This document shows positions 5,101 through 37,544 of a stretch of DNA of 41,420 bases, piece after piece. The notes below the pieces were generated by a model. The model searched no databases and was not told the DNA's origin. It worked only from the letters and a program-made list of their open reading frames with translations. A program made the translations under genes and the position numbers. The stretch covers positions 1 through 41,420 of the forward strand of contig DF237156.1 in assembly GCA_000708835.1 (NCBI GenBank), in the 5' to 3' direction. The stretch's first letter is position 1; the number at the start of each line of letters is the position of its first letter. The DNA is from Klebsormidium nitens. Its lineage: Eukaryota > Plantae > Klebsormidiophyceae.

Positions 5101-8100
5101 AAAGCAGGTTGAAAACGCAAGGTCCGCAGTCCATGTCGTTGCTGGACTGAATTGGACAACGCCTCGAGTGGCATCACCGGGAAGGAACGAAGAGCTCCAG
5201 CTGACTAGATAGTCAGCCAGCTTGCTGCATCATCACCATCACATGGCGCTTCCCAAGTGGAGAGCCTCTAATCACTCGATATTTGTAGAAAGTAAAACCA
5301 GGAGGTACCATTGGTATAATTTTACAGTGCATGCTAGCTCACCTACACGCTAGCCTTCGAATAGAATGTTAGTGTTCGACATTAATTCTCTACATGGCCA
5401 TGTCAGAAAACCTGCTCGCCTGCCTTGCGAACACCTTCGAAAGAGCAGAATCACAGAAGGGACGTGTCGTGGCGTCAGATTCCGACTATCCCGTTTGTCT
5501 CTGACCTGGAAGCCAAGCTTTCCGCAACAATCATTACCACAGCCGCATGTACAATTAGACTCATGTAGCTAGCTAGATAATGAACTGGTTCGATGCCGCT
5601 TACAGGATGATGGAAGTTCCGAATCTGGGCCACCGTTTTAAAAGACGACGAACAAGAGAGTTGAACTAATATGACATCTGACAATCCGTTCCGGATGTAA
5701 AAGTGACGTGAGACACTGACGTCCGACCGCCCGTCTTGTCAACTACGTGCGCGGCCGTGGCCACACGCGACTGGCTATTGATTGCCACGGCATGCACTTA
5801 TAAAAGAATAAGAGCGACAGGACAAGCGAAGGGAGGTCAATCAATTGAAGATATCAAGGCAAAAGAACGGAGAAAAGCGACGGTCCCTGGCGGTAGTTGA
5901 GTACGATGACTTACCCCGGCTCGCAAGCTGAGGGTTTTCAGGGACATTACAAGGCGAGATAGACCCTTTAATTACTTGATGATCTGCACACTCATGGGAA
6001 GACAATTCGTGCTTGGAGAGACGTGGTTTTAAAACAAGCGATAAAGGAGCTTCAATCTTTCCCGATTGTAGAAGCGTCAGGGCCGCTCATCGCTATTACA
6101 TCAGCCAGGACTTGGTTGGCAGTCTAGCTAAGGGCTCTCTAGAACAGCTGTCCTTGCTCTGCGACAAGGTGGAGATCGAAAGGTGAGGCAGATGCTTTGT
6201 GTCCCCAGTGAGACATGCAGCATTGCAGATCTGACCTCGAAGAAGTGACTTCAGAAAGTCACGATTCCATGCGAGCGGCCCCCTTCTTTTTCGACCCGCG
6301 CGCGCGGCCGCGGCCGTACGAGAATGGCCCCAACAAGGACGGGTCGAAGACAAGTAAAAGCAAAAGCAAAACGCAACGGGAAGCGAAGGGAAGCGAAGGG
6401 AAACAAATCGAAGGGCCCCAGCAGTTGGTCGTGACTCAAGAAGCGTTGCGGACCAACTTTTTTGAGATATATCGCGTTTACAGAGTCTCCTTAGCGGCTG
6501 TTGCATGAGAGTACAGTAAAGCCAACTCCGACAGCTTGGCCGCGCCGGACAAACATTCATTGATTCGTAAGCACGAAACCTGACTCTCAAAGATTTGTAT
6601 GCACACAGCGAAATCATATTTCTTTCAAAACTTTGATAAGTTCTTCACGAGCAATCATTTAGTATTTTGCGCACGACTTAGCAGCCAGAAAAAAGAAGAG
6701 GGCGCGGAAGTGGAGCATCTGCGCGCGGCCGCCTGGCGTCTTGTGAGGTCAAATCTTTGCATGAAAACATGTATGAAATGTGCGGCGTGTGCAGGACGGA
6801 CGCGAGCGCCTCAATCCCCGGCCCACTTGACGCACCACTTTCGATCTTTGACCATTTATCTTTCATTGCTTATCCGCACGTCAGGTTTACAGGTTTCTAA
6901 AGCGACTGACCGGCGTGCAGGCTGTGCCACATCGATCACGACCATGCAAGAAAACCTTTGGTAATCCGTGGGAGCAAGAGCATGCTCGGAAGAGCCGATT
7001 GCGCACCAAAATAATCGCGCACAGCGCAACGTGGCCGCGTTCATTTGCATTAGCAACCCTCAGCTTCACATATAGCTTCGACTTTACACCCGCCCCTTAA
7101 AAATAGCGAATCTATCAAATAAACCGTCGAAACCCATCGTGCTGAGATGATCGTCTTGTCGACAGGGAGAGAATGTTGCAGTACATTTGTGAAGCTCAAC
7201 CAGCGCATTTGCAGCGAGTCTCAGTTTGAAGGCGGCTGCCGCCGCCCATGTTTAATGGTTGTTGTTTCGTCGATCGAAAGCTTCACGATTGTTACGAATG
7301 TGACGGTCTGGTCTGGTCAATTAGATGGCAGGATACAATATCCTCGAAATGCAAGAAGACGAAGTTCGTGCAGGTGCATGACAGAGGGGTGACCACTTGA
7401 GGACACCTCGTTATTCCAAAAGCGGCCAATTATCTCTCGATAAAGGTCCGTCTGACAATCTGGATCGAATAGACCAGGCCCGGCGTTTGGCTCTTAGGAC
7501 GTTGATGCGGTGGTAAGGGCTCATTCATATATTAATGTACCTTGGCGGAGCCAGGTTTTTTTTTGATAGGTAGCCGCCGCCGGCGTGGAACCCGCAACAT
7601 CCTCACATCCTAGCATGGTCCTGTTTATGTAACCAAGGGTCTGACCCAGAACTAAGATGAGAACCTAATTAGGAAGCAGGGAGCAAAAAGGTAATTGAAG
7701 GCTTTTGGTTTGACACGTATGGCTGCAGGCTGTCACGGTGTCACCGGCCTACCATACTGACAAGCTACGGTAGCCTTGCAGCTAGGTAGTAGTAATCGCA
7801 AGTGTTCGGCGGATTAATGATTACCACCTGATTTATACCACGTGCATGAACATATCAGTTCTCAGCCGTCGATCATTTGAGTCTTGCAATATTCGACGGC
7901 GGATCGAACTGCTTCACGTGGCAGCCCATCGAATACCGGTATGTAGGTGACTCGTGAGTGCATCGTACGGGTGTACGGCTGTCCATGCGGGGCACACAAG
8001 TCTGCATAATGCAGCATACCGTAACTGATACCTACTGTAAGCTGTAGCTTCTCCAACATGGCTTTGTTTAAAGCAAAGCACAGAAAGGTGCATGTTGTGT

Positions 8101-8700
8101 CTACTTCAAGCTGCCACGCACCTGTGGCCCTTCGTAATTCGCGTGAGGTGCTGCACGCTGCCAAGGGTGCCCCTTGACCCTGCTGGACTTTCAGAGGGCT
8201 AGAAAGGAAGCGAGTCCTGGCTTACCGCGCAAACGGCATTCACTACCAAGATTTTGGCTGAAAGTGCTCTTCTGAGATATCTTAGCAAAGCTGGGCCAAA
8301 GTTGGGTGTAAGGATCTGATGCTATATGTAGGTGGAAAGTGAGCGGCGAGGAGTCGTTCAGGTGTTCAGGTCCTTGCTTGAGACTCAACAGCTGCTTGCT
8401 TGTTTGGCAGCTCGACTAGCTCATGCTGACACAATTCGTGGTCAAGAACAAAAGTAGAGAGTTGCTGCAGCATAGCTTCTGTAGTAGCTTGCAGTACCAG
8501 CTTAGACACCAGCTCAAACCTGAGCAAAGCAAGGATGTGTAGGCATGGTAACAAGCAAAGACTAAGCATAATGCATCCAGAAAGAGCTAAACCAACAGCT
8601 TCTCTGATTTCCCCCTACATCAGCCCTGCAGGCATTGTTTTGCTTCTAAGTTTCTTAGGAAGAGGTATCGCAGACTAGGTAGAGACCGCACCTCGACCAG

Positions 8701-11700
8701 GTGCTCCTCTTCCTCCGCCGATCTCTGCTGGAGAATGCCCCTTGGTGTTCCTCCAATCAGACATTCAGCACGCCAAGCAATCTGCTTGCTCTTCCAGTGA
8801 GTCATTATGATTTCCAGAGTTCTCCTCTTAACAACAATTGTGCAAATGATGTGGTCACCAATTGCATCAGAAGTTGGTGTGTGCAGTCTGAGCTTGAGCT
8901 TAAGTTTTATGATAGGCTTTCGAGCTGGTCCTAGAAAAGAGGCTGCTTACTTTAAAGAAGCCCGGCAACGTTCATTCCTCAACCTAGATATCATTCAATA
9001 CTGGAGAGTCCTTCTTTACTACAAACTGGGTCCATCAAAACAGTGGGAAGCTCCCTTCCCTTATGAAGTTGGCTGGTGACCAGGCAATTCCTCAGTGGCC
9101 TGATATTGAACATTTGAAACGCACAGGTTTTACCTGCTTCTGTCCAACGGGACTGCTGCTTAGTAACGACACTAAACAACAATAAGCTGGAGGCACCCTA
9201 CACTCAGCGGCTTCCTTGATGCTTCAGGCACGGCGGCCACCATTGGGACTGGAGACCTTCCCACAAATTGCTGCAACCAGATTCGGGCAGCGTTCTTCCA
9301 AGCAAGAACACGCTATGCAAATGACACTGGCCGCCTGCTTCTTCCACAAGCATCAGCAGATGCATGCATCCAGGTCGGCCAGCGCGATCGTCCTGCTCAT
9401 CGCCTCATTCCTTATCAATATAGATTGGAACATGATCATATTCAGTTGGAGAGCATTCCAGATGCTGTTCTCTTGTTGATGTTTTATAGTCAGGCTATCC
9501 AGCATTCAGGTCCGTTTCAAAGCTTAGGGCTGGGATATCTGTCCCAGTTAGGGCCCAGCTGACCAACTGCTATGCTTGTTGGTGCCGACTGCTTATTGGC
9601 AGTTCCTGTAGAATGTGGACGAGTGTCATCATTTCATGCATTTAGCAGTCGGAGGATATTGTTCTTTTCTGGATAGCATACGGAATACCTTCTAAAGTTG
9701 GATTATTGGTCTTTTGGATCAGAGATGCTTTCTTGAAGGGTCTAACAAACTAGAAGTCTGGTAGATTCTTCTAGCAGGAATTTGTGTGTATGCTCAGAAG
9801 CTAATTCTCTAATCTCAACTCGCAGAACTTCACTGCTTCTTTCTTCGCGGCTGGGATTCTTGTCCCCAGCGACTGCAATGTTACCAGTGGAGCACTCTCC
9901 GAGGAATCAGGCATGGCTTGTGGAAGCAACCTCACTACTGTCTACAAATTTTGGTCTGCAACAAACCGCACTTTTCCAGGTGCGTCCACTGGGTGAAGGT
10001 TCCCTTAACCATTTCTTAATCGTGTTCTTCCTTATCAATTAGAGTGGCAGCAAGTCAGAAAACTTGATCATTTCGCATAACGCTTTTCTACCGGTGCAAG
10101 TAGCATGGATATATGGGGCATCAAGGGCGCATATGTAGCCAAGGAGCTCTGGTCGAGATATACTGCCTTACGTGTGTCTTTCAATTGTGATGTCAAGGGG
10201 AGTGAATGCTCATGAGCCAGTAACCTCAATCAGATGCAACAGAGCATATTGAACTGACCTCTGGTCTTGGGCAAGAGGCGAATCTGATGTGTATCTGACA
10301 GTAGGATCCGGGTCAGAAAATGCAGTTTGAGGTCTGAAGCTCTGCACAAGCAGTATTGTATAGCTGGTCATGCATGAGCTACGGTTGCCTCACTCCATTG
10401 GATGTTGTACCAGGTACGGTTGGGGCCAGCTGCTATGCGGTTCAAGGAACCAATTGCGGCCTCTGCACCACCCTGATCACAAATAAGATCATGTCCCTTG
10501 GAAGCAGCACCGCCGCTTTACTCAGCACACCTGCTTGCCAGGGTGAGGTCGCTTACTGACAGCGAGGCCCACAGGGAACCACGTTAGCTAAGACAATTGA
10601 TTGACGGAAAAGGTCCTAATCATAAAGTTGCAGACTCGAATATTGAAACGCTAGAGGACAATAAATGACTAAACTGCTGAACCGACTGAAGTGAACTCAC
10701 ATCGTTTCAAGCCTGTTTCATTCCCCTCAACCACCTTCCAGGGCTTTTGAACAAGGAACTTCTGAGCTCGCACGTGACATATAACGCAGCAACGTATACG
10801 TGCCTTCTCATCGCCTTGCAGACCTCGCCCAGATTGCAATGACCGCAGCGGCCTACCCGGTCGCTATTGCCAACGGAATATCCCAGTGTCTGCATGCGGT
10901 CGATATTGCTCCCATCATACCAGCGGCTAAGTGCACGGCTATTGACTGGGAGGTCCAGAACTTCACCGCGGTCGCTCTTAGCTGTGGCCCAGCTCAGATC
11001 CGCCCGGATCGTTGCTGCGACCTTATTGTCGGATCATTCGGCCAACAACATGGGTTTTATTTCCGCAACACGGGGCGTACCCTGGAGCAGGTACGTGCAA
11101 GCTGTCCTTTTGCTGTGACTGATTTGTTGCCTATTGGTCGGGAGAAAAATATCCGACAATGAAGCTTTTGAGTAAGCACAGAAGCTTTGGCTGCTCACCA
11201 AGCTAGGAACGAAACTCTTGGCAAATAACCTGGCAGCTTCTAACCAGCCGATAAGCTGCCATGGTGGCGTGCCAAAGCTCCCTGTTGCGTCACGGGTCGT
11301 GTCGGATTGAGGAATTCGAAGCTGAATCGATACAATCAACTTTCAAGTTTCTAGATTCCGTGCAAAGAGTTTGCAAGTTTCACGCTGTGCTTCTTTGCCC
11401 GGGATGCTATGCATAAAACAGTTGCTGGCAAGGTTGACTTTGACATCAATTGGCAGATTGCTTCGTATTAAGTCGTTGGCGGCCTGACCTGGCAATCGGT
11501 AGGAATAGATTAGCCCAGTTGAGCACATATGAGCGGACCCGCCTAACAACTTGTGCATCCGATGTCTTCCTCTCATGCCCCATTTTTGATCTCGGTCGTT
11601 GCAGGACCAAGTTCAGGTCTGCTGGTCGGAATTCCAGAAGGCGCTCGTGGCGAACGGCGTTCCGCTTACTTCTTTGGATACATGCAGCCACATAACGGCT

Positions 11701-14700
11701 GCGAACCATCTCATGAGCGTTGGCTGCTACAACTATACCACCAGCTACCAACGAGTTCCGAGCCAATACCTGGATCAAATTGCCACCTCCTGCAACGGCT
11801 CTACCCGCGACTGCGGCCAATGCAGGCCGACATTCATAAGAGTCGCCAGGGAGCTTGCGAACACCAACGATGCAACCTACGTCACCAACTGCATACTCAC
11901 TCTAGGACTGCAGTTCTCTTCCTTGATGTCTGGCATCGAAGAGATTACTGCTTGGGAGAATTGCTACTATCGATTCCCACCCCCGTTGGCAATTCTACCT
12001 TTCATCTCCCCAAGCGCCGACCACGTCGTGAAGTGGGCTCTAGTGGGTGTACTCACTGCTGTTGGAGTGGTTGTCCTTCTTTTCGTCCTAGCAATTCTCG
12101 CTGTCAAGCGTTATCCTCTCCGCAAGGCTCGGTTTAACCATAAGCTGGCAACGCTCAGCCGCATATCGTCAATCAGCCTAAAAGCCTTACAGAAGCGGCT
12201 GCAAATATACAGCAAGAGGCAACTAGAGAAGGCGACTAAGAACTTTGATGAGAGCCAGCTTTTGGGCAGTGGGGCTTCCGGAAAAGTGTACGTTGGTGAG
12301 CTCGATGGAGAGGTGGTTGCAATCAAGGTAGCAATCATGAATGTCGGGAAGAACGGAGTGAAGGTGAGGCTGAACAGACGGTTGTAGTCCTTGTGTTTAA
12401 CGACGGTTGAATCCAATTCAGAAAAGCCTCTCTCTGCAGGGCACTGGTTTCTTTCAGGGCAGGCAATATGATCGAAAACGGAAAATGTTTGTGGAAGCAT
12501 TGACACGCCACCTCGCAATACGATTGAAAACGGGAATGTTGTGGGAGCTTGGAAATGACATCTCGAAGAATTAGAAAGGTGTTGTTCTTCCTCCCGCTCA
12601 TAGAACCCGCTTGCCCAGAATCTCAGCGCGGGTGCTTACAATCGTGCAGGAAGCTTGGAACGAAATTGCGACGCTAGCACAATACCGGCATCGTCACTTG
12701 GTGTTTCTTAAGGGTTGCTGCATCTCGGAACCCCACTGCAGGTGAGCGGTTCAAGTGCCTGAACTCATGTTGACACTACGTAGCAGAAGCAGTGATGTAT
12801 ATTGATTGGTCGAATTGAAAGCTCGCAAGCGAACGCTTCATCAAGCGATGCTTGTAAGCAGGACAGTCTCTTCGTCGAAATGATTGGTCAGGTCCTCAAT
12901 GTGCGGATTTCGCCTTCACGCTTCGTGTGAGCATCATCGACAGGCCTACAGATGGTGGGGTTTTGGACGAATTGTTGCTCAGGGCAACGGCTTTTCTTTG
13001 CATGCAGAGGCGCCCGTGCAAAGCCGGACGGCTTGCACATGCGTGTGCTCGTCACGTAAGCCCTTCAAAATGGCGGTCAATTGGAGACGGTTAAGTGCAG
13101 ATCTCTTTCTGCTCGATGATCTCTTTTGCAGCCTCGTCTACGAGTTCGTGGAGCAAGGCAGTCTGGAAGGCCATTTGTACCCGCAGCAGCCGAGGAGCGG
13201 TCTGGATCAAGCCCGCTTCCTGGACTGGCCAACTCGCGAGAAGATTGCACTCGGAACTGCTCGCGGGCTGATCTACCTTCACGATGTTAGTCATCCAAAA
13301 GCTGTTGAGTTTGTTATCCAAGTTCAGGCCTGGACAGAAAGCAGAATCAGCATCTCCACTATACGTTCACTAGATGCCACAAAGTTTCATGCTTGTGTGC
13401 TCACTTACGCCGCGCGTAGTGCTTTGTAATGGTTGAAGCAGGGTTTTGCATCTATTACTTTTTTGCCTGAACCTGGCAATGCACGAAGACTTCGCAAACA
13501 GTCAGGCTTTTATAATCTATTGTTCCGCGGTCGGGATAGAATAGTAGAAGCTGGTCAAAGGGCGCTTAGGAGTCTCGGGCTGTCAATTGAGCCTCACCTT
13601 TGTCTCCGAAGACTCAGGACGGTTTCGCTTCCAAACCCGGTTGAGTCCAGGAACCTCAGCGGCTTTCTTATTTAGCCAGTCTAATCTGGTTGAAGGGCGG
13701 CTAATCGTGGCTCACCAGGCTTAGTAAGTGACGGTTGCTTCCCAAAGAAACACAGATCCGGAATAAAGGAGATGCATGGAAGTTTCTTCAGCCGACCAAA
13801 ACACAACGACTCCGTCCCGATACTTTCGCGCTTCCGTGCTCCAGGACTGCAATCCACAGTGCATACACCGTGACGTGAAACCGAGCAACATCTTGCTCAC
13901 GGGCGACTTCGAAGCGAAGCTTTCTGACTTTGGCCTCGCAAAGATGGTGGATACGGACGCCACACACATCACGACTGGTGAGTAGCATACAGAGTCCCCT
14001 TGCACTTCTCAAAAAACCCCATTGCACTTTCCTCAGGGGCAAGTGAAACTCACAGATTTACTGTTCGGCGGCACAATGAAACTCGGATTCGCACAAACAA
14101 CGGTGAGAGTTACCGAAAGCAACTGAAGACACGAAACCAATCAATTTGCCCGGGCACGAAACAGGATGGGTTTCAAAACCTGACCGTGCGACATGTTTTG
14201 GAGCCATGCGGGAAAGGAAGTCCGGCACCAAGAATCTGCGTTAAGCAGGAAAAGCGAACAGCGGTCGGTTCAGTATGCCGTCTGCGTACTCTCGCAAAAG
14301 AACGTCGCAGCTCGGATGAGCCTTCTAATCTCGATCGATCAACATGTAAAGCACTTAACGAAAAAGCTGAGCAGGCAGCTCCCTGACTTTCTGCCAATGG
14401 AAGCTGTCTTTTTTGGGGTTAGTAAAGTTTCTAGGAGTCTATCCTTCCTACGAACATTGACCACAAAGTTTGTGTTTCCGCAGCGGTCGCGGGTACATCT
14501 GGCTATCTAAGCCCGGAGTACGTGGCTACCGGAAAGCTGACGGAAAAGAGTGACGTGTACAGCTTTGGGGTAGTACTGCTGACGTTGGTGGCAGGGAGGC
14601 GGCCCACCGTTCAGGGCGCTCCCCCAGACGAGGCAAGCGTTCCGCTCTAACTTTCTTCGCTCGTTCTGCTCTATCCGCTCATTCCGCTCATTCCGCTCGT

Positions 14701-15763
14701 TCCGCTCGACTCGTTCCGCCCATGCGCCACGACTATGCGCCGATTTGAAACGACACTAATCCCAATCCCATCCATGTTTCGACTCGGATCTGACGCACAA
14801 TTGTAGTCTGATCAGTGCTTGCGGCACCAGTGTAGCTGATTTTTCTGTTGCTCCTTATTGAGTCAGGTATTCTTGACGGAGTGGGCATGGTCGCTGGCCG
14901 AACGGAACGAGCTTGGATTGCTGGCCGACCGACGATTTTCATCGCAAGAACAAGAGGAGCATGCGGAAGGCATGGAGCGGATGACCCGGGTAAGCTACGT
15001 GGGGTCGTCTCGACCACACGGCGCCTTAATTTCCCCTAGGCACATGCCCAGAAATCTCCTTAGCATTAAAAAGGGTTTTGGATACAGCAAGACATTAATA
15101 AGATCTCAAATGGTTTCTCCAGTCGAGTGTCAACTGTTGATCGTTCAAAAGCAAAGTCGAGTGCAAACCTGCATTTTGTAAAGTGTAAAAGCCAGACGCC
15201 CCTGTCGAGGTAGCCTTCGGAGGTCCGCGCGAGCTTTTCGCGAGGTCCTTTGTCTGATCTGTTCTGTCGTCTGTGATTTGTTACCTCGTACTTTGGAGTT
15301 ATCTTGACGTCGAGTCCGGCCGCCGATCGTGGACGCTCTTGAATGTCACAAAATAACCTCCAGTGTCGTCCTTTCGGATGCCCGGGGTTCCAGACAGTCC
15401 GTAACCCGATTGGTAACCGAGGAGGTTCCACCTCAAGCTTTGTTTACCCTGCTCATCGTGTTTTTTGTCGAGATCGAGTCCTCAATTAATCCTGAGACGC
15501 ATCCAATCACGCATTCTTCCGGACCGCAGATTGGCCTGCTGTGCGTCCACATCACCATCAGCATCCGGCCCAGCATGCAGCAGTGCGCGAACATGCTCTT
15601 GCGGTTCACGGACGTGCCCCGGCTTCCACGGCGCCCCATGACCCTCTACACCATCTCGTCACTCGCATCTTCCGCCGAGTCGAGCAGCGCCACGATAATC
15701 TCGTCGTGGCAAAGAAGCTCGGATCGGACGCTCGGATTGGTGGAAACAGGCTCCTCTGCCTGA
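8701..15763 (+). CDS. Receptor-like Ser/Thr kinase (RLK/Pelle) with two tandem SPARK-type Cys-rich ectodomains, TM helix and RD kinase; 5' end (signal-peptide exon) unresolved
   Basis: Hand-built exon chain: 8701-8796, 9228-9373, 9826-9979, 10414-10542, 10822-11090, 11605-12363, 12650-12741, 13132-13285, 13845-13977, 14484-14632, 14867-14989, 15530-15763. All introns end in AG and start with GT, except 14633 (GC). Phases are consistent at every junction. Total is 2438 nt = 2 + 812 codons including the stop, with no internal stop. Kinase motifs: [65 protein letters not shown]. Confidence 0.92.
8736..10889 (+). other. SPARK-type domain 1 (12 Cys, split over 5 exons)
   Basis: Spliced translation: [102 protein letters not shown]. 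The pattern C-C-CC-C-C-C-C-CxxC-C-C matches RKF3/URK-2-type ectodomains as I recall them. Most of it is absent from the ORF track. Confidence 0.8.
10932..11964 (+). other. SPARK-type domain 2 (12 Cys)
   Basis: [45 protein letters not shown]|[42 protein letters not shown]. Same cysteine order as domain 1, with several N-x-S/T glycosylation sequons. Confidence 0.85.
12034..12106 (+). other. Single transmembrane helix of the RLK
   Basis: [24 protein letters not shown] followed by the basic stretch KRYPLRKAR (positive-inside). Confidence 0.9.
14633..14866 (+). other. Probable GC-AG intron in the kinase gene
   Basis: The exon ends GAG|GCAAGC, a strong donor consensus apart from GC, and joins in frame to VFLTEWAW at 14867. 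An in-frame but poor GT (GTTCCG, 14639) is an alternative donor. Confidence 0.6.
14674..14709 (+). repeat. 9-bp tandem repeat (TCCGCTCRT) x4 with degenerate flanks, intronic
   Basis: tccgctcat tccgctcat tccgctcgt tccgctcga; related copies occur across 14641-14720. Confidence 0.85.
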
Positions 15764-17708
15764 TATAAGGTTCACAATTATCGTGGGGGGGATATAGTAG
15801 CGTTGTAACTCTTGCAATAAGAGTACATTTTTGAATTAGTCAAAGTGAAAATGGGTTCGAATAGTCAATGGTGTAACGGCCAAAAGCCCTTTTTAAACGG
15901 TTTTTAGTGCTAGCTTCCAATGACCGAGCTGAGCATAGTGTTGGTATCGAACATGGTTTGCTCAGAGCCACGGCTGCAGTCAAAGTAGGTCATATAATTA
16001 AGAGGGTTAACCCATAGACAAAGTACCCCGAAGAACACCAGAGAGTGCTTTGCACAAGTAGAGGTTGCCTTTATCAGTCGCTCGGACTTTCCGGCGCGGC
16101 GGCAGCAAGACGTTGGCTCGAGGCCCACTTACGGTCCATCAGAGTTACGCGATCATGATCCTCATTACCACATCAGCTCTTAGCTAGCCCAATCACGTCA
16201 TGAAGCAACCGCGCGCAGCCACGGATTGCACCGCCCGGACTTGGCGGCTTGCTCCGACGGCGATCACGCGACCAGACAATTATGTGTTGAGCAGAACTCG
16301 GAAGAAGGGTCCCCGTCATGCATGCACAGTTGCTGCACGCAGGGCGCGGTTGCGGCTCGGTCAGACTGAGATGGAAGTCTACCGCGGAACCCTTAGAGCT
16401 TGTATATGTTCCCACTTTTCGGCCTTCCTCATGATTAGCTTTCAAAGAACGGATCAGCACCTGCAATTCCCTAGCCGGCACATTCCACAGCACGACTTGA
16501 TATGTGCATCTGGAAACAATCGGTCATCATTCCATCATCGACCATAGATGTGCTGTCGTCCGAAGCGTGTTGCCGGTTCCACCCATGACCTCCCGTCCTC
16601 CTGTGCTCGATGCGCGATGCGATCGGCCACTCTTGAACGCGACCGTTCCCCGGTTCCGTGAGAACCAAGCCCGGCGGTCGAGCAGGCGGCCAAGAGACCT
16701 GCGCCGCGAGCTACAATTTCGACTGGGTTCTCTGTGGTACAATAAGCGGCAACAAGTGTGCATCAGGCGTGAACAAACGGTACCCATTGGAAGATAGATT
16801 GTCGGAAATTTGCCGCCTGGATTTCATGGGGTTTACGGAGACAAGTGAAGCTGGTCCCTCAATTCTGGTAAAAGTGGGCTTGCCGCGCGCGGGGGAAACA
16901 GGTACACTTAAAGTGCACACCAAGTCCGCAAGTTTGTACCGCTAAACGGTTTATTTTGACTCAATAGGGCAAGCACACTTTGAAAAAGGAATCTGGTGCA
17001 GCTCCATCGCCCACAGCCATTGCCCGCTGCGCAAACAGAAGGTTGATTCAACGCAAGCCGTGATTTTGCAAGGATAGCAGCCGTCAGCAGGGTAAATATG
17101 CCCTACTCTAGATCTGCGAACAGGCTGGCTCGACAATTTTTGTTTGCTGCCGTTTGCGACGTCAGGACATTGCCAGAGCTCGGGCGTCACTCCCCGGAAG
17201 CCAAGCGACTTTCCATCTTCGTCAACACAACTCTGATCTCCAAGGGATTCCGAGACTACTCTATCTCAATCACGAGACGCAGGATTTCAAACGCCTGCTA
17301 TCCTGATTGCGTCAGTCGCATTCCCGTACCGGAGAAGAAGCCTGGGGAGCTGTAATGCCCCGACAAGTCCAGCGCTTTCTGGCGGCTACAAACAGACGTG
17401 GACTATTGTTTGACGGTTACTTGACGATGTATCTTCACTGCTCTTAATTCCTCGTTAACGTTGCCCCCGCATCGCGCGGCAGACCACAAATTGGAGTTGT
17501 TCGGTTGCACGGCGGGGTAGCTCTTTCAGGCACGTAGCCTGCCTACTTGCGCCCGCGGCCGAAGCCCGGCCGCGCGGCATAACAGGGCGTACCTCAAACG
17601 AATTTCCGGGCGATCCAAAATTGAAGGTTTGGATGTTAGCTCGAGAATGGGGTGGCTAGAAAAGGGATGCAAGCGAGCCATCGCAAGTCAATGCGGCGTT
17701 AACGTACG

Positions 17709-34926: not shown

Positions 34927-35070
34927 CTGTCGTGCGGTACACTATCGTTGCGGCAACGTCTCGGCGCCATCGTGTCCTGCGCCTCATCTACGAATTGCAT
35001 CATACTAATCCAGCAACAACAATTTAGCTTGCTACCCCCCCCATGCTCGGCAGTGCCGTCTCGGCACAGC

Positions 35071-36140
35071 CTACTCCTCCTCCTCGCCCTCCTCGTTCAC
35101 CACCCGCCAGCGCTCCGCCAGGATTTGAGCCGCGTTGGCATGCACAACCCCTGCGCCCGCTGGGCTTGCGCGCCGTGCTTCCACCAGCCGTGCGTCTCGC
35201 AGCTCCTTGACCATCGCCTTGAGATCGAAGATCTATCTCCTCCCTTAGCTCGACAATCGTGATGTCACGAGGGTCAATCACCCCCGACCCCTGGGCCGCC
35301 TTCTTGCCGGCCCACTCCGGCTTCATGCTGGGGTTGCTCGACCAGCACGCCCCCTCTGCATGCCCCTGCTTTCCACACTTGCCGCACGTCGTCGTCCTGC
35401 TCAGGGTGCAGCGCGCCGCCACGTGATCAGGCTCCCCGCATCGGAAGCAGCCCGCCCCGTCACTGCCCCTCGCCACTCCCGCAACCGTCCCCCTAATGCT
35501 CGCAGCCGCATGCACTAACACAGGCGCCCCCACAAGCTCCGATGCCTGCCACCCCCTGTGGCCCTCAGCGTACGCCTGCGCCAGGTCGATACGCTCTGCA
35601 GTCTCAAATGCCTGGGCAAGGGTGTACACCCCCACAGGGCAGCGCATTGACGAACGTCAACGCCTGCTCCTTCTCAGTCAAGATCCCCGTCTCCTCCTGC
35701 AGCCTCTCCAACCGGCTCAGCAACATCCGGCAGGTCTCATCCTTCCTCATTGCCAAGTTCTGCAGCTCCCTCACGTGCGCAGCGCTTGCCGCCCCAAACT
35801 CCTTCTTGAAGAGTGTCACCAAGTCCTCAAATGGATCCCACTCCGCCATCACCTTTGCCTTCTGCTCCTTCGTTGCCCCCTCCTCCACCTCTGGCTCCTC
35901 CAAAATCTCCCACTTCTTCTTGCACCAAACCTGCAGCGCTTCGTTCTCCAAGTAGGCTGGAAGCTGCTGCAAGAACTCATGCGCTTCCAACTTCTTGTCC
36001 TTCGACTTTGCCTTTGCAAACGCTGCCTCCAATCTGTCATGGAAGTCATCCAGGGACATAGTCCCTGGGCGCCCGCTGTACAAGCCATATCGCCCTCCCC
36101 CCATCTCTGTCGCTGCAGACACCACATAACTGCCTGCCAT
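35071..36140 (-). pseudogene. gag: Frameshifted retrotransposon Gag (capsid-like region + 2 CCHC zinc knuckles + C-terminal coiled coil)
   Basis: MAGSY..YSGRPGTMSLDDFHDRLEAAF..LPAYLENEALQVW..FVNALP, then a frameshift near 35635 into VYTLAQAFETAERID..CFRCGEPDHVAARC..CGKCGKQGHAEGAC. A second frameshift near 35225 leads into FDLKAMVKELRDARL..EEGEEEE* (TAG at 35071-35073). Confidence 0.85.
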
Positions 36141-36568
36141 TCTTGCTAGAAAGCACCCCCCCCAGCTGAAATGCCCTCTACTTCGTCTATTCTGAGCTCA
36201 AGCACACCTGCTTTCAGCTCAAAACCCACAATTCTAGCTCAAACACACAATTTGAGCTGAACCCTAAATCACAATGCCCCCACAATGCGCTGACGCTCCC
36301 GCCTTGCGCACCCCCCCAAAGAAACGCACTCGCCTCTGTTGCTTGACAAGCCCACACAGGGCTGTCTTGCTCCACAGTCCTGGCTGCAGTAAGCCTGGAC
36401 AACACTTAGACCGATTCACAGCCTGTCAGACTCAAGAACCTGGACAAGGCCGCACTCAGCTTTCCAGACCTCCGAGCCTCCGCTTGAGCGCAACCTGAAC
36501 ACACAGGCTGCCTACCACAACTGCTGTTTGGATCTTGCAGGAAACAAAACCCTTAACTTTCTGTACGT

Positions 36569-36975
36569 AGAAATAAGCACACCGCTTAATGAAAGGATGA
36601 TGCTGGCACACCGCCACAACCGCCAACGTCGCCTCGCCGCATACAAGAGCAATAACACAATTGCTCAGGGAACTTCTGATTTGGCACCCATGGAAGAAGC
36701 TCTGCTTGGGGTTCTCACTGAGCCTCCATAATGCGGCTTCTCTCTCTTAAGGGAAACGTACAGAAAGTTGCCTCAGCAACTTTCAAGTCCGGCATAAGGC
36801 TCCAGTCGGAACTACCGGTATGCTAGCCTCCAGTCTACGCAACATGCAATCTATCATTGAGTCCGAGTCAAACGCAATCGTACGATTGAGTCAAATCCTA
36901 ATCATCAACGGCTGAAATCTATCGCGCGCGCGCAGCTCCGATGTACTGCGGCACTGAGCCTGTACGGCATGACAG
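36569..36975 (-). repeat. LTR-like direct repeat (5' copy relative to gag)
   Basis: See the partner copy. This copy may extend to TGTACG at 36562, which would give TG...CA ends. Confidence 0.85.
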
Positions 36976-37544
36976 GGTCGGCACCATGGCGTATTCGACG
37001 TCCCTATCCGATAGCTAGGCCGTGAAAACTATAGTCAGCACGGATATACACACTTGCCAACCATCTGAACACGGCAAAAGCATTATTTTGCCAATTAAAG
37101 GAATCTTTAGCGAGGATGTATGCCGTATCCGACCTTCATGGTGTCTTTCATTAATTATGCGGACGCGTGCCATGTGCACATGTACATGTACTCGTAAGTC
37201 ACGGTTTCTTGTCGCCGTGAAGGCGCTATACATGATTATGCGTTCAAAACTGCGAGCCATGCGCATGTCTACTGAGTCGCCGATTCAAGCAATGAAAGGC
37301 CCTCAATCTGCTCTGACAGTGAAGTGTATAATGTGTCATGCCTTTTAAAGAGAACACTTGTTGGCGATTAACCGTAATTCTTTTCACCCTTTTGGCCGTC
37401 CTTTCATACAAAGTGATATTTGGACGTCGACAATTTTGCGTATCTGCAACAACTTGTTATTGACGTCCTCATTCAAGTTGTAGCTTTTACTACGCGACTC
37501 GGATGCTTTGCTGCATGAGGGTGGGGGGTAGGGCGCCAAAGCAC

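Follow-up and report, generated by a model that had tools for sequence, protein, structure and literature searches.

SPARK is the ectodomain of the ARK/KIN3-type symbiosis kinases, and the URK-2 clade of SPARK receptor-like kinases (RLKs) is described as land-plant specific. The land-plant SPARK RLKs (SPARK-I/URK-2, with ARK, SPARK1 and KIN3; URK-1; RKF3) share a SPARK ectodomain with its Cys pattern, a transmembrane (TM) helix and an RD kinase with the gene described below, but carry one SPARK each, whereas that gene, from the streptophyte alga Klebsormidium nitens, has two. The domain was defined by Montero et al. (2021, PNAS, PMC8237591), with a 12-cysteine arrangement as its signature; the same study counted 17 SPARK receptor kinases in K. 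nitens, most of which have two SPARK domains in tandem, and placed them as a separate monophyletic clade. No ligand has been reported for a SPARK domain (PMC10226568, PMC11287157). We analysed a window of 41,420 nucleotides (the whole stretch of DNA studied, i.e., positions 1 to 41,420 of the forward strand of K. nitens contig DF237156.1, assembly GCA_000708835.1). With a probability of about 85%, the locus at 8571-15763 would be the K. nitens gene annotated as GAQ84805.1, a member of a Klebsormidium-specific family of RLKs with two tandem SPARK modules, in which an in-frame TAG codon is either recent or an assembly error. An earlier note on this DNA had proposed the two-SPARK receptor as an undescribed architecture; this does not hold, as tandem double-SPARK RLKs have been known from the same species since 2021 and are the norm for the family (PMC8237591).

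The locus shows the order found in the other K. nitens double-SPARK RLKs (signal peptide, SPARK, short linker, SPARK, TM, RD kinase) and the same Cys register in both modules, with an ectodomain identity of 37-66% (83% to the closest paralogue, P0169, in exon 5). Unlike them, it carries a TAG after the signal peptide and has been deposited as a one-SPARK protein of 656 amino acids. A three-frame reading of 8400-15800 gave a gene of 12 exons on the + strand (8571-15763), with the following features:

Exon 1, 8571-8796, + strand: start codon ATG 8571, signal peptide, Cys 1-2 of SPARK module 1
In-frame TAG stop, 8676-8678, + strand: in exon 1, after the signal peptide and before SPARK 1
Exon 2, 9228-9373, + strand: Cys 3-5 of SPARK 1 (CC...RYANDTGR...ADAC); conserved in the related loci L001, L002 and L003
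Exon 3, 9826-9979, + strand: Cys 6-7 of SPARK 1 (SDC...)
Exon 4, 10414-10542, + strand: Cys 8-11 of SPARK 1 (ASC, CGLC, PAC)
Exon 5, 10822-11090, + strand: Cys 12 of SPARK 1 (10887-10889), linker, first four Cys of SPARK 2 (from 10932)
Exon 6, 11605-12363, + strand: Cys 5-12 of SPARK 2, TM helix (12034-12105), juxtamembrane region, kinase subdomains I-II (GSGASG, VAIK)
Exon 7, 12650-12741, + strand: RD kinase
Exon 8, 13132-13285, + strand: RD kinase
Exon 9, 13845-13977, + strand: RD kinase, with HRD and DFG
Exon 10, 14484-14632 (or -14638), + strand: RD kinase
Exon 11, 14867-14989, + strand: RD kinase
Exon 12, 15530-15763, + strand: RD kinase, stop included
SPARK module 1, 8736-10889, + strand: 12 Cys
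SPARK module 2, 10932-11964, + strand: 12 Cys

The introns measure 230-570 nucleotides and all are GT-AG, the exon-10 donor being the one possible exception. Across exons 1-6 the phases are 1,0,1,1,0, and the six exons therefore join in frame to give two modules of 12 Cys each, as the earlier note had read them (2+3+2+4+1 Cys per exon in module 1, 4+8 in module 2; no codon split by an exon join encodes Cys). Exon 1, which also has an upstream in-frame ATG at 8535, encodes the signal peptide sequence ...AGIVLLLSFLGRGIA and ends at the donor a/gtgagt (the slash marks the splice border here and below), with the C1 codon (TGC) of module 1 at 8736; the last Cys codon of SPARK 2, in exon 6, is 11962-11964. 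The exon-6 donor (aag/gtgagg at 12363/12364) is confirmed by the deposited K. nitens protein and by a transcript product of Klebsormidium subtile (P0177, ...KNGVK/EAWNEI). At the end of exon 10 (window 14630-14640) two donors are in phase, GC at 14633 (GAG/GCAAGC) or GT at 14639; the GenBank model takes the latter (...PPDEAS/VF...), whereas the K. subtile product reads PPDE/VFLTEW, that is, a GC-AG intron with its donor at 14633, and L003 has the same GCAAGC. Exon 6 is overlapped by an open alternative frame of 194 codons (window 11547-12134, frame 0), in which the K. subtile open reading frame (ORF) begins; this open frame is probably a compositional accident.

Both modules have the same Cys order, which matches the conserved Cys positions in an alignment of 30 SPARK modules including those of land plants, and they share the motifs RYANDTGR, NYTTSY, GASC / ATSC and CGLC / CGQC. 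Fourteen residues separate C12 of module 1 from C1' of module 2; the TM segment is a hydrophobic helix of 24 residues, followed by KRYPLRK. The kinase domain is complete, as in RD-type RLK/Pelle kinases (G-loop, VAIK Lys, alpha-C Glu, HRD, DFG and an APE-like motif), with GSGASG, VAIK, HRD, DFG and SPE (SPEY) all present, so that the shared motifs, short linker, TM and intact RD kinase of the earlier note were all recovered, as was its count of introns (four in module 1, one in module 2). Spliced-model searches were run exon by exon or with natural database proteins as queries. The Pfam SPARK profile (PF19160, gathering cut-off 25 bits) matched exon 2 alone at 27.3 bits (profile 34-71), exon 6 alone at 20.5 bits (profile 66-152) and module 2 in the window's own sequence (P0005:46-238; P0005 is GAQ84805.1) at 38.6 bits (profile 9-152), and thus both modules pass the cut-off, module 1 by way of exon 2. 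Module 1 of the paralogues P0169, P0170 and P0011 scored 38-49 bits. Exon 2 also resembles 11004-11084 in exon 5 (41% identity, E 0.003). For the kinase, P0005 matched Pkinase at E 1.5e-41 and the PK_Tyr_Ser-Thr profile over 5-257/258, and Pkinase was matched by exons 9 and 10 singly. At the genomic level, two tandem SPARK modules, a TM helix and a kinase are thus found in one gene, the ORF of this copy being broken by the TAG.

Two AlphaFold models, one of the window's module 2 (predicted local distance difference test score, pLDDT, 65; predicted template modelling score, pTM, 0.58) and one of module 1 of P0169 (pLDDT 76, pTM 0.75), were both all-alpha, which fits two similar folds. Foldseek searches of the PDB with both models gave no match better than E 0.8.

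With an exon-6 profile built from the three related loci as query, the top match among 1.84 billion representative proteins was GAQ84805.1 (“Protein kinase superfamily protein [Klebsormidium nitens]”, 656 amino acids), which is 100% identical to the window from Met 10491, inside exon 4, through exon 12 (its residues 1-17 are 10491-10541). This agrees with the probable algal or early-diverging streptophyte origin that had been proposed for the stretch. The deposited protein joins exons 4-5-6, and an independent annotation thus agrees with the junctions from exon 4 onward. As deposited it shows one SPARK, and it is a 5'-truncated model of the two-SPARK gene: because of the TAG at 8676-8678, the database protein starts inside exon 4 with a single SPARK.

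The three related loci were obtained by a word search with exon 6. L001 is a contig of Logan SRR23617307, and L003 and L002 are two contigs of the Joint Genome Institute (JGI) soil-type metagenome 3300060284. L001 and L003 are orthologues (best match to the GAQ84805.1 gene) and L002 represents a paralogous lineage. All exons occur in the same order in the three loci, with an orthologue amino-acid identity of 75-97%, and acceptors, donors and phases are kept at nearly every boundary, the exception being the exon-2 donor of L001. By exon, identity was 75% in L001, 76% in L003 and 68% in L002 for exon 3 (tblastn; collinear with P0011 119-154), 88% in both L001 and L003 for exon 4, and 89% in L001, 84% in L003, 59% in L002 and 55% in P0011 (195-283) for exon 5. 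Introns of the window and L001 are alignable in patches only (about 70-78% identity). The ratio of non-synonymous to synonymous substitution rates (dN/dS) between the window and L001 was 0.18 for exons 1-5 (SPARK-1), 0.16 for the kinase and 0.20 overall, at a synonymous divergence (dS) of 0.46; for exons 3-5 it was 0.09-0.33. This conservation of exons, splice sites and low dN/dS, together with the patchiness of the introns, shows that exons 3-5 are genuine coding exons. On the window's own branch we counted 49 synonymous and 22 non-synonymous changes overall (ratio 0.14), of which 26 and 7, respectively, fall in the SPARK-1 exons (ratio 0.09), and the coding sequence was thus under purifying selection almost to the present.

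A second word search, with the ectodomain part of P0005 as query, identified the K. nitens paralogues GAQ89420.1 (P0169, the closest, 66% identical), GAQ89583.1 (P0170), P0171, P0172, P0173, GAQ86782.1 (P0011) and P0176, of 827-885 amino acids, as well as a kinase-less K. nitens protein (P0174) and a K. subtile transcript product (P0175). By a local hidden Markov model search, two tandem SPARK modules are present in 8/8 K. nitens paralogues and in P0175, and in the paralogues examined both modules scored above the Pfam cut-off. P0169 and P0011 continue without a break over the site of each exon join. In the alignment of 30 modules, modules 1 of the paralogues cluster together (47-65% identity among themselves vs 21-26% to modules 2), as do modules 2; the internal duplication therefore predates the expansion of the family, in line with the old duplication suggested earlier. 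In sequence searches the best matches of the ectodomain were all two-SPARK proteins of K. nitens or K. subtile (E 1e-134 to 1e-48), and land-plant proteins appeared for exon 6 only at E 1e-16 or weaker, the best of them including proteins named RKF3. Two land-plant proteins with 2-3 SPARK domains (P0021, P0024) were considered as true tandem ectodomains and rejected, as TM and kinase pieces lie between their domains, i.e., they are fused tandem gene models.

Several observations weigh against the reading of the locus as a double-SPARK gene recently interrupted by a stop. Pfam support for module 1 comes from exon 2 and the paralogues. Taken singly, exons 3 and 4 had no significant match in Pfam or in the land-plant SPARK profile; when their alignments were compared with the land-plant SPARK alignment by hhalign, exon 3 fell in the expected register but weakly (E 0.021) and exon 4 gave nothing, and the C-terminal half of module 1 is therefore assigned by collinearity with the paralogues. 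In the public runs (4 with any of the region), no spliced reads were found that cover the exon 1-5 joins. Of the sampled words, 5-6% occurred in four runs of one study, and their reads on 7600-13400 gave four unspliced contigs of about 250 nucleotides at a depth of 2-3; one of these is purely intronic and two cross the donors at 9373 and 9979 unspliced, and the four look like DNA. In another twenty runs labelled with this species, next to none of the region was present. P0177 shows that the K. subtile orthologue is transcribed and that its exons 6 to 12 are spliced as in the present model; a search with P0169:1-400 found no transcript ORF of K. subtile that spans exons 1-5. Support for the exon 1-5 joins therefore comes from the related loci and the paralogues.

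The TAG replaces the Tyr of a conserved D-Y-V motif: the window reads GAC TAG GTA where L001 and L003 read GAC TAT GTA and L002 reads GAT TAT GTA, and DYV is also present in P0169 and P0011. In all five of these relatives exon 1 is one uninterrupted ORF, with start (MINT... in P0169), signal peptide, ...A-D-Y-V-E-T... and the first Cys. A single T-to-G change converts the Tyr codon to TAG; the coding sequence, about 2.5 kb in all, has no other lesion. Because the window's branch has been strongly constrained, the TAG is either very recent or an assembly error. An exact look-up of the 47-amino-acid ORF of exon 1 returned no record. The earlier note had started exon 1 at 8701, which avoids the TAG but leaves neither start codon nor signal peptide, and the relatives read through from the ATG. 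Two ways round the TAG were considered and judged unlikely, a mini-intron at 8665-8700 (in phase; at 36 nucleotides far shorter than the introns of 230-570 nucleotides) and a join of 8547 to 8701, which is in phase yet removes the signal peptide.

The orthologues are damaged as well. L003 (6678-13850) has a frameshift in exon 6 and three stop codons, one at the end of exon 5, one in exon 6 (TGA in place of TGG, following VQVC) and one in exon 10 (PTI*GAPP); its exon 1 is intact, with TAT. This copy, in a related alga, is a multi-lesion pseudogene. In L001, which is otherwise intact, the exon-2 donor is TT, not GT (L001:1133-1134), and splicing at the next downstream GT would put the reading out of frame; the TT may be a true lesion or an error in the contig. 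The Trinity product P0177 of K. subtile (EP00243_P001871, 522 amino acids) has its first 64 residues in the alternative frame of exon 6 (window 11682-11878) and shifts into the SPARK frame near 11875, and is thus either frameshifted or mis-assembled. Taken together, it looks as if one gene of a large receptor family has recently been lost more than once. For the copy in the window, we put the chance that it is a young pseudogene or a non-functional allele at a little above even; that an error or polymorphism underlies the TAG and the full-length two-SPARK receptor is made seems unlikely, and some other bypass of the stop more unlikely still.

The second of these possibilities, an intact gene in which the TAG is a mistake of sequencing or assembly or is polymorphic in the sequenced culture, deserves the closest consideration of the alternatives to a disrupted gene, even though we doubt it. 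It agrees with the solitary nature of the lesion, the branch ratios of 0.14 overall and 0.09 in the SPARK-1 exons and the intactness of all splice sites, but the independent damage in L003 (three stops and a frameshift), L001 (TT donor) and P0177 (frameshifted in exon 6) speaks against it, since the orthologue therefore seems dispensable, and no run of the species contained enough of the gene to suggest expression. It is improbable that the gene truly makes the annotated one-SPARK protein of 656 amino acids (from Met 10491) and that its upstream exons are non-functional remnants: such a product matches the GenBank model and translation begun at the ancestral start is stopped by the TAG, but the start falls in the middle of the last segment of SPARK 1, leaving a lone Cys12, there is no recognisable signal peptide, and all paralogues have the long form; moreover, exons 1-4 carry 26 synonymous vs 7 non-synonymous changes on this lineage and were therefore coding until very recently. 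A single-SPARK receptor made by skipping exons 3-5 (join of 9373 to 11605, both phase 0, with complementary partial Pfam matches of exon 2, profile 34-71, and exon 6, 66-152) is very improbable, given that exons 3-5 and their splice sites are conserved (dN/dS 0.09-0.33), that GAQ84805.1 joins exons 4-5-6 and that both modules are retained in all paralogues as well as in P0175, the K. subtile transcript.

Under the favoured explanation, a Klebsormidium double-SPARK gene with a recent or erroneous TAG, the ancestral form, like that of the paralogues, would be a type-I membrane receptor. From what is known of the family, the signal peptide would send the N-terminus into the secretory pathway, and the two all-alpha modules of 12 Cys, with several N-x-S/T sites and probably six disulfides each, would form the ligand-binding part; one TM helix would cross the membrane, and the RD Ser/Thr kinase would signal by phosphorylation upon ligand binding. 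The T-to-G change giving the TAG would then be a very recent event, if it is not an assembly error.

LLG1 and LLG2 are LORELEI-like glycosylphosphatidylinositol (GPI)-anchored co-receptors of FERONIA for RALF peptides. Among all PDB sequences, LLG1 (6a5d) was the top match of the SPARK-module profiles, with E 0.18 for a profile of 18 sequences and 0.031 for one of 30, and the LLG1 segment C-P-x-N-F ... C-x-G-P ... CC was aligned to SPARK C1-C4. Structural comparison, run exhaustively over 48,161 chains, pointed to the same small family (LLG structures 6a5d and 6a5e), i.e., two independent methods agreed, each with a signal below the level that the tools call safe. With a land-plant-only SPARK profile the PDB search returned noise only, and LLG1 was absent. 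The LLGs have 8 Cys, a GPI anchor and no kinase, whereas the SPARK modules of the GAQ84805.1 gene have 12 Cys each and are followed by a TM helix and a kinase, and so lie outside the eight-Cys, GPI-anchored definition of LLG/LORELEI. No paper linking SPARK with LLG or LORELEI was found in the searchable literature. We raise only tentatively a possible distant relationship between the SPARK module and the LLG/LORELEI fold, a suggestion that is rather more likely to fail than to hold. If it were true, SPARK receptors would be LLG-like binding modules wired to a kinase, Cys-rich peptides or CrRLK1L-type partners would be candidate ligands, and there would be a first structural handle on binding by SPARK ectodomains, those of the mycorrhiza kinases included.

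Elsewhere in the window, 35000-37000 has a G+C of 0.62, a GC skew of -0.33 and long overlapping ORFs on both strands. The ORF 35027-35647 (- strand) contains a CCHC zinc knuckle (Pfam E 2.8e-4) and is possibly a retroelement gag remnant or a gene for a CCHC protein.

For this family, the addition lies at the level of annotation. GAQ84805.1 is 5'-truncated, and in its one-SPARK database form it would therefore be scored as single-SPARK by a domain census, so that a census of database proteins under-counts the double-SPARK members. The premature stop and the independently damaged orthologues fit a birth-and-death turnover of the receptor family.

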